Assembly (NCBI RefSeq): GCF_021869535.1
Contig: NW_026262712.1
Coordinates: 52,018,001 to 52,082,000 of the forward strand
DNA length: 64,000 bases
DNA from: Mytilus californianus
Taxonomy: Eukaryota
Direction of reading: 5' to 3'
A model generated the notes under the pieces. It saw only the letters and a list, made by a program, of their open reading frames with translations, was not told where the DNA came from and did no database searches. The position numbers and the translations under genes were made by a program. Positions 38,601-41,600 of this stretch are shown here, piece by piece. How positions within the stretch are numbered: the first letter of the stretch is position 1; every line of letters starts with the position of its first letter.

Positions 38601-41600
38601 TTAGACCATTTTGCTCTTTTCTTTATTTATTTTGTCCATTATTCTCTATTCTGTAATCCCCATCCAGACCCTTTTACATGCCCAAAGTTTACAGTACATT
38701 AATTTCTAATACATGAAGGTGGCCATCATCTGAACATTTTATGCCTTTTTTCCCAATATAATCTTCTTTTATGTATTTCATTACGGTGAGAATGTGTTTT
38801 GTGTACATCAAGAAAGCAGGCAAAAAAAAAAAAAGACAAATGATAAACACCTTTAAATTCACTAAAATAAAAACAAGGACCTGGAATTCTGACCTTGATT
38901 TTCACAATTCCTTTTTTTAAGCTAAATTTAACCTCAATAGAAACAAGAACTTTAACAGTATACTGTCGATTCATTATTATTTGTGGGATACCTATTTTCT
39001 GGGATGTCTTCGGTATAGTTAAAAATATAGTACAAATTTAAATGTTCAACCAAGTACAAATTATCTATAGGTTTGTAAGCAGAAGTTTGCAAAACAACGA
39101 AATCAAGTGTCCACAAAAAATAAATGATTATCAACCAATGAAAATTGGTTCTAGCGAAAATATATGAATCCATAGTAAATGCAATTGCACATTAATTAAC
39201 ATACAATATACCCATTAAGCACCACTCTTTAATGTATTTTATTTCAATTATAAAGAAATATGACCAAATAATTGCTTACATTTGTATCAATTAGTTGCTT
39301 TATAATGCATGCTGTCAAATAAAAGATGGCGATGTCAAACCTAACACTTTTGAAATTTTTTTCATTTTTTTGAAATTTGTAAGATCCCCAAAAACTTGGT
39401 AAATTTCTGTAATGGTAAAACAATGAAAATTAAAAAAATACTGGAAATTTATTTTGAACTAATAAAAAATTCCAATGACTGGTAAAATCATCTATAATTA
39501 GACTATCTTCATATTACTGGTTTTTCTCTGTAGTATATAATTTTACACGAAGTTACCATTTCTGTAATAGGACATTCTGGTACTCTCTCAAGTAAGAGCA
39601 ACCAACAGAAGTAAAATCCAGTTTACAATCGGTGCAATTTAGGGAAAAAAATTTATGTTTTCTATACATGACAAATCATCGGAAAAGTCAAAAGTTGGTA
39701 ATATGAAAAAAGTCTATTAGCAAACATATTTTTAACAAATGTTACCTTCAAGAAACCTCTAGTTTAATAATTTTATTACCTATATAAGCAAGAGTTTTAT
39801 TGACACAGAAAGACAGATTCAGACAGTGCAGTGCGGTACAGACTCACTTGGTTTTTTGTGACCACTTTCGTAATTGGGATAGCTTGTTGACTAGGAAAAT
39901 CCCAATTCCTCTAGCTAAAACATGCACAAATATATACTGATTATGAAAGCATAATGAATAATGAACAAATATGGCTAGCATCTACACATCCAAACTAACA
40001 ACTCCATGCGGTGATGTCCCTGTAAAAAACTACCAAGGTGGATTAACAGCTCATTCACATTTTCCATTTGAAAACTAGGTTCATTATTACTTTTGAACTA
40101 ATTAATTTTTTTTCCATATCTTTATAAGATTGAAATCTTCAAAATTTGTATGCCCAAGATACAGCAGACTAACAATGAAGGTTTCAAATATGTTTTAAAA
40201 TGAAATGCAAAATTATAGAATCATTTCAGAGCAAAATCAATCAAAGTTTAAAAGAAAAATGTCAATGAGCAGCAGTTAAGGAGGGATAACTCTTCCTATT
40301 AAAAACAAATTTCACAAATGCATATTTTCCCAAATCTGCCTTTTTCAGAAGATTTTTTATATTAATTTTTATAACACAGATTTCCACTTTAATATGAAAA
40401 CTTTTTCAACCTTGTTATTTCCTTTGTGGTTCTGTTATGCATTGGAAAAAGGGTAGCAGAGTTATCTCCCCTTAAAATGAGAAATAGACTATAATATTTT
40501 CTTTTCACCCGAACTCACTTGTTTGTTTTACTATCTCGAGACCATTTCTTCAGTTGAGACAGCTTGTTTACCAAGAAAATGCCTATTCCTCTTGCTAAAT
40601 TATATAAAATTAGGAATATTTGTTAATTTTTTATTTCTTTTTATCTACCTATTTGTGTATAACATATAGGCAGTGTTTACGGATATTTTCCAGATGTAAC
40701 AATAAGGAAAGGAAATGTGAGGCAGAATCAAATAAGACTACAGCCCAACAACAGAAGATAATCAAAATAAATATAAAAAAAGTATCCACTCTTTTTTTTC
40801 TGTTTAGCAAAAAATTGACAATATTCATTAAAAACTACAACTAAAGCATATACCTACAACAGAAGCATATAAAATGTACTTAACAATAATAATCAATGAG
40901 CAATCTGGACAAAAGGCATTTAATTTCAAGGTTTAAAATCCTCATAGAGAGATAACTTCTCAAAATTTTGTAAAAATTAGCCCCTCTCTTCTCTTTCCAA
41001 AAAAAAACACCTCCTTTTCAAGATGTAAATCCAAACCATTTGCTTACAAAGCTTGTTTTGCCAAATATATATGTAGATGGCACATGTCTTTACCATTATA
41101 GGGTTTAATTAAGCTTCAGATAATATTATTTAATTTATAGGGGACTTTCTTAAAAGACAACTACAAGTACTATTATGAAAACTTAAAAACGAAACCTCAT
41201 GCCCCCTTACAAAGTCAAAAATTTGCTTAGGGAATCCCAAAAATAATTCAGATAAAAAAATAGAAAATTAAATGGAGAATAGACACAGATGATGCCCCTG
41301 CTTGCATATAACATTATAAAGGGACATAACTAGAGAACTGTAAAAGTGATGCCATCCAAAATCAAACTTGATCTGTGTTTTATGGTTATAAGCATTGTGA
41401 ATAGGTTTCTTAACATTTGGTTGAGGCAAACTAAAGTTAGAGAACGGAAACTAAAAATTCAGCAATTTCTCCATTTATAAAGGGCATAACTCGAGAACGG
41501 TAAAAGTGATGCCACCCAAATTTGAACTTAGTTTAAGTTTTGTGGTAATAACATTTGGTTGAGGCAAAGTAAAGTTAGATAATGGAAACTAAAAATTCAG

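Follow-up and report, generated by a model that had tools for sequence, protein, structure and literature searches.

A very likely case of tandemly duplicated, mutually exclusive exons in the TTLL1 gene of Mytilus mussels

The window analyzed here is a 64,000-nt stretch of the Mytilus californianus genome (RefSeq assembly GCF_021869535.1, contig NW_026262712.1, positions 52,018,001 to 52,082,000). On its minus strand lies the gene for TTLL1, the catalytic subunit of the tubulin polyglutamylase complex and the core of the main polyglutamylase of cilia and neurons. TTLL1 proteins served as tblastn queries to identify its exons, the splice sites were then placed by eye, and the resulting model has 14 coding exons with GT-AG at all junctions (Table 1). 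Two assembled transcript contigs matched this model exon by exon, with boundaries exactly as modelled. The model contains two alternative versions of exon 5, here called 5A and 5B. With 5A the product has 423 amino acids from the ATG at 55721 or 418 from the second ATG, and with 5B it has 420 or 415. We consider it very likely that 5A and 5B are a genuine mutually exclusive pair that arose by tandem duplication.

The assignment of the gene to TTLL1 is supported by several observations. The TTL/ATP-grasp domain (PF03133) is recorded for proteins identical to its products, and among solved structures the best relative is TTLL6 (E = 2.9e-39), with TTLL7 also found. The A form is identical over 418/418 residues to XP_052066825.1 (M. 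californianus TTLL1-like isoform X4) and the B form over 415/415 residues to XP_052066823.1 (isoform X3). In a tree of invertebrate TTLL1 proteins the mussel protein groups among those of bivalves, and its exon 3, exon 4, and exon 5 motifs are shared with the vertebrate TTLL1 matches.

Both copies of exon 5 are preceded by ...TTTAG and followed by GTGAGT. Each opens with the second and third bases of an Ala codon (GCA or GCT) and ends in AA, and their lengths (76 and 67 nt) are both 1 mod 3, so that one can be swapped for the other without loss of frame; the splices 4-5A-6 and 4-5B-6 both give open reading frames. Over the first 19 codons, 10 differ synonymously when the split Ala codon is counted, and a single codon replaces Lys (AAG) with Arg (CGA), leaving 41 of the first 56 nucleotides and 18 of 19 residues identical. 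Nei-Gojobori counting gave 13.5 synonymous differences over 13.8 sites and 1.5 nonsynonymous differences over 43.2 sites (Fisher p = 1.2e-11); the synonymous sites are saturated and dN/dS between the two exons is far below 1. Selection for nucleotide divergence as such was also considered, given a pS of 0.98 versus the 0.75 expected at saturation, and was set aside because about 14 sites are too few for such a claim. At the 3' end 5B encodes RKWSQKT, unlike the tail of 5A, the difference being a 9-nt deletion in 5B. The alignment of the two copies stops at the exon edges; the introns do not align, and only the splice signals match beyond them. The 5B stretch is single-copy in the 1.65-Gb genome. 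In the first-pass annotation of this DNA, the pair had been described as two exons 604 nt apart with AG/GTGAGT boundaries and with the lengths, codon counts, and divergent tails given above; every one of these elements was correct on remeasurement. Its proposal of a duplication held under purifying selection was likewise borne out, both by the low dN/dS and by a comparison with a distant mytilid (see below) in which all six differences in 5B are synonymous.

Exclusivity is at the least enforced by the reading frame. When 5A is joined to 5B, the junction reads AAC TAG, an immediate stop, and when exon 4 is joined to exon 6 the frame shifts and a stop follows after 17 codons. Because both of these splices stop early, the pair is frame-locked, as the annotation had predicted, and the truncated products would probably be removed by nonsense-mediated decay. 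Other sources of exclusivity were examined and rejected: the 604-nt intron is too long for steric hindrance, U2/U12 incompatibility does not apply because both exons have ordinary U2-type GT-AG sites, and the AG present about 23 nt before the 5B acceptor points to a branch point close by, not a distant one.

Spliced transcripts of both kinds were found. Two Logan contigs were retrieved by exact protein look-up and then mapped on the window. Contig L011 (SRR13891809, 1838 nt) consists of exons 1-4, 5B, and 6-14 and encodes exactly the 420-residue isoform, and contig L012 (SRR13891792, 1497 nt) consists of a 5' noncoding exon followed by exons 1-4, 5A, and 6-14, its product being exactly the 423-residue isoform. 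Both encode proteins identical to those of the window and differ from it by 2-7% at silent sites, and for the latter reason their source is taken to be a different individual or population, or a sister species. The TTLL1 protein encoded by a third full-length contig, L002 (SRR34486197, 1351 nt), is 89% identical, and the contig has only a B-type exon 5. Each of the three full-length contigs carries one exon 5, in two cases 5B alone, and none carries both or neither. Since exon 5 is uninterrupted in every contig, a single form probably predominated in the respective run; given how assemblers behave, this would suggest a switch-like use of exon 5. The two isoforms predicted by the annotation (423 and 420 amino acids) are therefore represented by fully spliced assembled transcripts as well as by RefSeq isoforms X4 and X3, which they match over the residues compared. 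A lack of 5B transcripts and decay of 5B in related species had been named as findings that would speak against the pair; instead, 5B was present in spliced contigs and intact in Mytilus coruscus and Mytilus trossulus.

The isoforms were also found in public annotation. In RefSeq, M. galloprovincialis X1 is of the A type (423 amino acids) and X2 of the B type (420 amino acids), and both types are also represented among older depositor models from M. galloprovincialis and M. edulis. Two M. edulis models (P0282 and P0307) join a shortened 5A (...KKWSRD, then T) in frame to 5B, producing a repeated 14-residue segment. A join of this type was absent from the transcripts examined here, and both models are probably prediction errors caused by the exon pair. 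Full-text literature searches for TTLL1 with "mutually exclusive" and with Mytilus returned no description of the pair. The expectation that no such pair had been described was accordingly correct for the literature searched and incorrect for automated public annotation, in which NCBI already lists both isoforms for M. californianus and M. galloprovincialis, in addition to the depositor models with 5B.

Table 1. Positions in the window of the TTLL1 features discussed, with the share of alignment columns that vary among M. californianus, M. coruscus, and M. trossulus
Feature	Position	Strand	Length (nt)	Variable columns	Remark
TTLL1 coding region, 14 coding exons	20569..55721	-			ATG 55721, stop 20569
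Upstream noncoding 5' exon	61042..61193	-	152		First 152 nt of contig L012, then joined to exon 55736-55596
Exon 4	42254..42358	-	105	5.7%	Single final G opens the split Ala codon (phase 1)
Possible RNA-pairing arm 1, upstream of 5A	40611..40635	-	25		Inverted repeat, 80% complementary to arm 2
Exon 5A, ancestral type	40519..40594	-	76	5.3%	100% identical in contig L012 (4-5A-6)
5A-5B intron	39915..40518	-	604	38% (middle part)	
Conserved intronic block upstream of 5B	39915..40074	-	160	5.0%	
Possible RNA-pairing arm 2, upstream of 5B	39953..39977	-	25		Inside the conserved upstream block
TGCATG hexamer (Rbfox-type motif)	39921..39926	-	6		Upstream of the 5B acceptor, invariant in the three species; lead only
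Exon 5B, derived copy	39848..39914	-	67	0/67	100% identical in contig L011 (4-5B-6, without 5A)
Conserved intronic block downstream of 5B	39788..39847	-	60	3.3%	
Exon 6	35605..35739	-	135		First base C (35739) completes AA|C, Asn, after either exon 5
Ordinary intron at this locus				38-56%	

To place the duplication in time, genomic TTLL1 loci of other bivalves were fetched via their annotated proteins; the mytilid genomes among them all belong to Mytilus, and for a more distant mytilid the B type is known from contig L002. M. coruscus and M. trossulus each proved to carry intact 5A and 5B; order and spacing are the same, 5B lying about 690 nt downstream of 5A, and the splice sites and frame of 5B are intact in at least five Mytilus species and in the distant mytilid represented by L002. 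Each of the loci from Crassostrea (oyster), Pecten (scallop), Pinctada (pearl oyster), Tegillarca (ark clam), and Solemya has one A-type exon 5, encoding the 5A peptide or a near-identical one (no more than two substitutions), and very permissive tblastn over the complete exon 4 to exon 6 region of these five loci revealed no second exon 5. Weak matches in introns of Pinctada and Solemya (18.5 bits, E = 0.56) were judged to be due to chance, and the Crassostrea intron that follows exon 5 measures only about 130 nt. Nor was a B-type peptide found outside mytilids among some 190 TTLL1 proteins from molluscs, annelids, brachiopods, echinoderms, tunicates, and arthropods. The exon 5 of L002 is identical to 5B at 61 of 67 nucleotides and to 5A at only 40 of 56, and exons 4 and 6 of the same contig are only 85% and 81% identical to those of the window. 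The L002 protein was placed with Mytilus (support 86/97) on a long branch, for which reason its source appears to be a mytilid outside the genus Mytilus or deep within it. On these comparisons, the A peptide is ancestral and 5B a derived copy that arose in Mytilida. The tblastn dating proposed by the annotation thus found 5B in Mytilus species and not in the five nonmytilid loci, and the term "old" that it had applied to the duplication holds within mussels and does not extend to those other bivalves, with their one exon 5.

The variability of the region was measured in a three-species alignment of the window with M. coruscus and M. trossulus (Table 1). Exon 5B is invariant while exon 4 and exon 5A vary at 5-6% of columns, and the intron block upstream of 5B is conserved to the level of a coding exon. 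An exon that varies less than the neighboring constitutive exons and lies in such conserved intron bears the usual signature of a regulated alternative exon. Because of this strong conservation, the choice between 5A and 5B is probably regulated through the intron sequence around 5B. The upstream block contains a TGCATG hexamer, the motif bound by Rbfox, with six bases between it and the 5B acceptor AG, and a second GCATG lies further upstream in the same block. In a scan for duplexes among nine conserved blocks, pairing of the region upstream of 5A with that upstream of 5B was the best of 36 pairs (z = -2.9), a score that is not significant after correction and that was obtained in AT-rich sequence; covariation is unavailable as a check, the arm on the 5B side being invariant. 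Such pairing would loop out 5A and is kept as a possible candidate.

The consequences for the protein were considered with an AlphaFold2 model of mussel TTLL1 (pTM 0.82). In this model, exon 5 encodes the strand at residues 153-155, the helix at residues 159-167, and the start of a loop leading to the strand at residues 181-186, with residues 170-177 of the loop modelled at a pLDDT under 50. Isoform B carries K162R on the helix, and R166-N171 (RDSKTN) is replaced by QKT (R166Q included), making the loop three residues shorter. The two isoforms share the same catalytic-loop segment, K-P-C-G-K-A-R-G-I-G-I. The variable loop corresponds to a 15-residue gap in the alignment with TTLL6 and for this reason is a TTLL1-specific insertion without a counterpart in that enzyme. 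The annotation had placed the isoform difference in a basic loop just after the active-site loop; the variable part is the end of a helix together with a flexible, TTLL1-specific loop, and the catalytic loop itself is unaffected. TTLL1 has been described as inactive alone and as lacking a microtubule-binding domain, its place in the complex depending on residues outside the catalytic cleft (PMC13376646). Our best guess is that the loop may adjust how TTLL1 contacts a partner subunit or tubulin, and not its chemistry.

Further observations were made on the same part of the protein. The K-A-R-G-I-G-I motif is encoded with either 5A or 5B (window 40577-42270 for exons 4 and 5A), and its Arg-containing form also occurs in molluscs, annelids, brachiopods, echinoderms, and tunicates. 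The corresponding motif is S-Q-G-A-G-I in insects and A-Q-G-K-G-I in vertebrates, and among the PDB entries for TTLL6 this position reads CQG in 6vzt and ARG in 6vzq; the Arg form seems to be the widespread state in invertebrate TTLL1. At the loop encoded at the exon 5/6 junction, isoform X1 of the chiton Liolophura sinensis (P0284) has a 5-residue insert (KSALQ), and an ENA metagenome protein (P0311) has a short WSQKSS version, so variation in loop length recurs in other lineages.

We then weighed other explanations of the pair. That it could be an assembly artefact, or two collapsed alleles or paralogues, would be conceivable in mussels, whose genomes are highly heterozygous and hard to assemble; we give this almost no credence, since the same arrangement is present in the independent M. 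coruscus and M. trossulus assemblies, the 5B stretch occurs once in the genome, and 5A and 5B differ at about 27% of aligned bases, far above allelic variation. A real second copy might still be a functionless duplicate, expressed at noise level and picked up by annotation pipelines and assemblers. The smallness of the protein change and the zero 5B reads in one sampled RNA run (X21, described below) fit such a copy, but a functionless exon would not be expected to keep its splice sites and frame across at least five Mytilus species and a distant mytilid, to show a dN/dS far below 1, or to remain invariant in three species in which exon 4 and 5A vary, and 5B was present in the assembled full-length contig of two runs. 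The gene also offers a direct contrast in the duplicated end of exon 11 (described below), a truly recent, apparently neutral duplicate in which the intron aligns along with the exon and a conserved Pro is altered. We regard the functionless duplicate as quite improbable.

It is also improbable, in our view, that 5B acts mainly as a regulatory "poison" exon whose inclusion after 5A lowers TTLL1 output via nonsense-mediated decay, with the 420-residue isoform as a by-product. The TAG at the 5A-5B junction would serve such a purpose, and the near invariance of 5B and its intron flanks is compatible with it, as nearly invariant exons with conserved flanks are also typical of conserved poison exons. 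However, an exon read out of frame needs no conservation of its amino acids, and 5B still encodes the 5A peptide despite about 13.5 synonymous changes, while its differences from the distant mytilid are all synonymous. The full-length contigs point the same way, as each of the three includes just one exon 5 (5B in two cases) and the two exons together are found in none.

A mutually exclusive pair of coding exons therefore accounts best for the observations, but several points weigh against it or against the role proposed for it. In RNA run X21, of which about 6% was sampled, approximately four reads fell on 5A and exon 6 and none on 5B; these reads come from a 6-kb stretch rich in transposon fragments, at a depth too shallow for junction counts, and the zero for 5B does not show that it is absent. 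For X9, a close relative, a contig of depth 32 covers 5A and a 984-nt contig of the same depth contains exon 6. In the raw-read data, 5B was seen only in unspliced contigs (X1 record 7 and X9 record 24). The A form is the common one in the X21 and X9 samples, and because of the X21 reads without 5B and the well-covered X9 contig with 5A, the B form is a minor or tissue-restricted one. That the two exons are never used together rests on few assembled contigs and on gene models, not on junction counts. The regulatory elements put forward, TGCATG and the RNA pairing, are statistically insecure. Finally, a functional difference between the isoforms is only a proposal: the protein change is small, and the net charge of the variable stretch is +3 in both.

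If the pair is what we believe it to be, its history and operation may be pictured as follows. An ancestral 5A was duplicated in tandem in the mussel order Mytilida; the 3' end of the copy was then altered by K162R, R166Q, and the three-residue deletion, and the copy has stayed nearly constant since. Mature mRNAs with 5A or 5B, as seen in the assembled transcripts, yield proteins of 423 or 420 amino acids, and the wrong combinations, which stop early, would probably be lost through decay. The choice of exon would probably be controlled via the conserved intron around 5B, and the difference at the end of the helix and in the loop may tune contact with a partner subunit or tubulin while leaving the catalytic segment unchanged. 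We tentatively extend this to a more specific proposal, which we rate as possible though short of probable: that 5B defines a mussel-specific, switch-like isoform, that the near-invariant intronic region activates 5B in particular cells (e.g., sperm, gill cilia, or neurons), and that the shorter loop alters the seating of TTLL1 in the polyglutamylase complex or on tubulin.

Mutually exclusive exons derived from tandem duplication are a well-known kind (PMC9013439, PMC9741552, PMC6071210), and the human events have been reviewed (PMC9741552, PMC8373072). The mussel pair resembles them in that the exons are homologous neighbors of the same phase, one is used per transcript, the isoforms are identical outside one homologous segment, and conservation of the coding sequence is strong. 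Unlike most catalogued human events, which are ancient and widely shared, it is confined to Mytilida and occurs in TTLL1, for which no such event was found in the literature searched. TTLL1 of vertebrates, insects, and other bivalves is the same enzyme with the same exon position, and the bivalve 5A peptide is identical or nearly so; the five other bivalve loci examined differ in having a single exon 5, and the chiton has instead an isoform with a 5-residue insert in the same loop. Substitution of a duplicated exon in an enzyme, giving two isoforms, is likewise reported for the alternative exons of molluscan COQ-2 (PMC7434440) and the duplicated exon of oyster alternative oxidase (PMC5589949). 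Those swaps are reported to alter a known property (quinone choice and stress response, respectively), whereas the swap in mussel TTLL1 falls in a flexible loop without an assigned role. In OGDH, exons 4a and 4b reach the same one-exon outcome by means of distant branch points (PMC7969005), while the mussel pair is frame-locked and has GTGAGT donors. The candidate pairing between the regions upstream of 5A and 5B is reminiscent of the competing RNA structures of docking/selector clusters (PMC6071210), the difference being its weak support (z = -2.9).

Little is understood of how the activity of TTLL1 is tuned inside its multisubunit complex (PMC13376646). Mussels have long maintained the pair under strong selection, and on that ground two isoforms that differ only in a TTLL1-specific surface loop would mark that loop as functionally relevant; they also provide a ready-made natural comparison for biochemistry. 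For the study of splicing evolution the exon pair is a clean and datable case, absent from five other bivalve orders, present across mytilids, and provided with near-invariant flanks. Should the switch-like isoform and its altered seating prove true, mussels would be adjusting the tubulin code through alternative splicing of the catalytic subunit, something that is not known to have been described for TTLL1 in any animal. The practical value is limited for now, as the isoforms are already in RefSeq and their function is unassigned.

Several other features of the TTLL1 locus were recorded. A 114-nt tandem repeat is present at window 23395-23622 on the minus strand, its copies starting at 23622 and 23508 and being identical at 104 of 114 positions. 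The repeat spans the last 40 nt of exon 11 and 74 nt of the adjoining intron. In the second copy a conserved Lys-Pro-Trp has become Lys-His-Trp; a possible CAG acceptor is present, and the copy is unused in transcripts L011 and L012. It looks like a recent, apparently neutral duplicate of an exon end. The acceptor region of exon 6 is also locally duplicated (window 35740-35830, minus strand), the genuine ...ttcaatttcagctttacacc... being preceded, at a distance of about 50 nt, by ...cttcattttcagctttaaacc...; splicing at the upstream AG would lead into a TAA or TAG. Intron stretches of TTLL1 at 36150-36360, 37760-38760, 38960-39160, and 41160-41550 had very high depth in RNA contigs of three mussel species and represent repeat families that are expressed and present in high copy number, among them an element arranged in tandem around 38190-38250. 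Finally, a VTT-domain gene (PF09335) was found head-to-head with TTLL1 in the oyster, scallop, and M. trossulus loci (L003, L005, and L010; positions 1 to approximately 1500-5300), a gene neighborhood that is conserved across bivalves.

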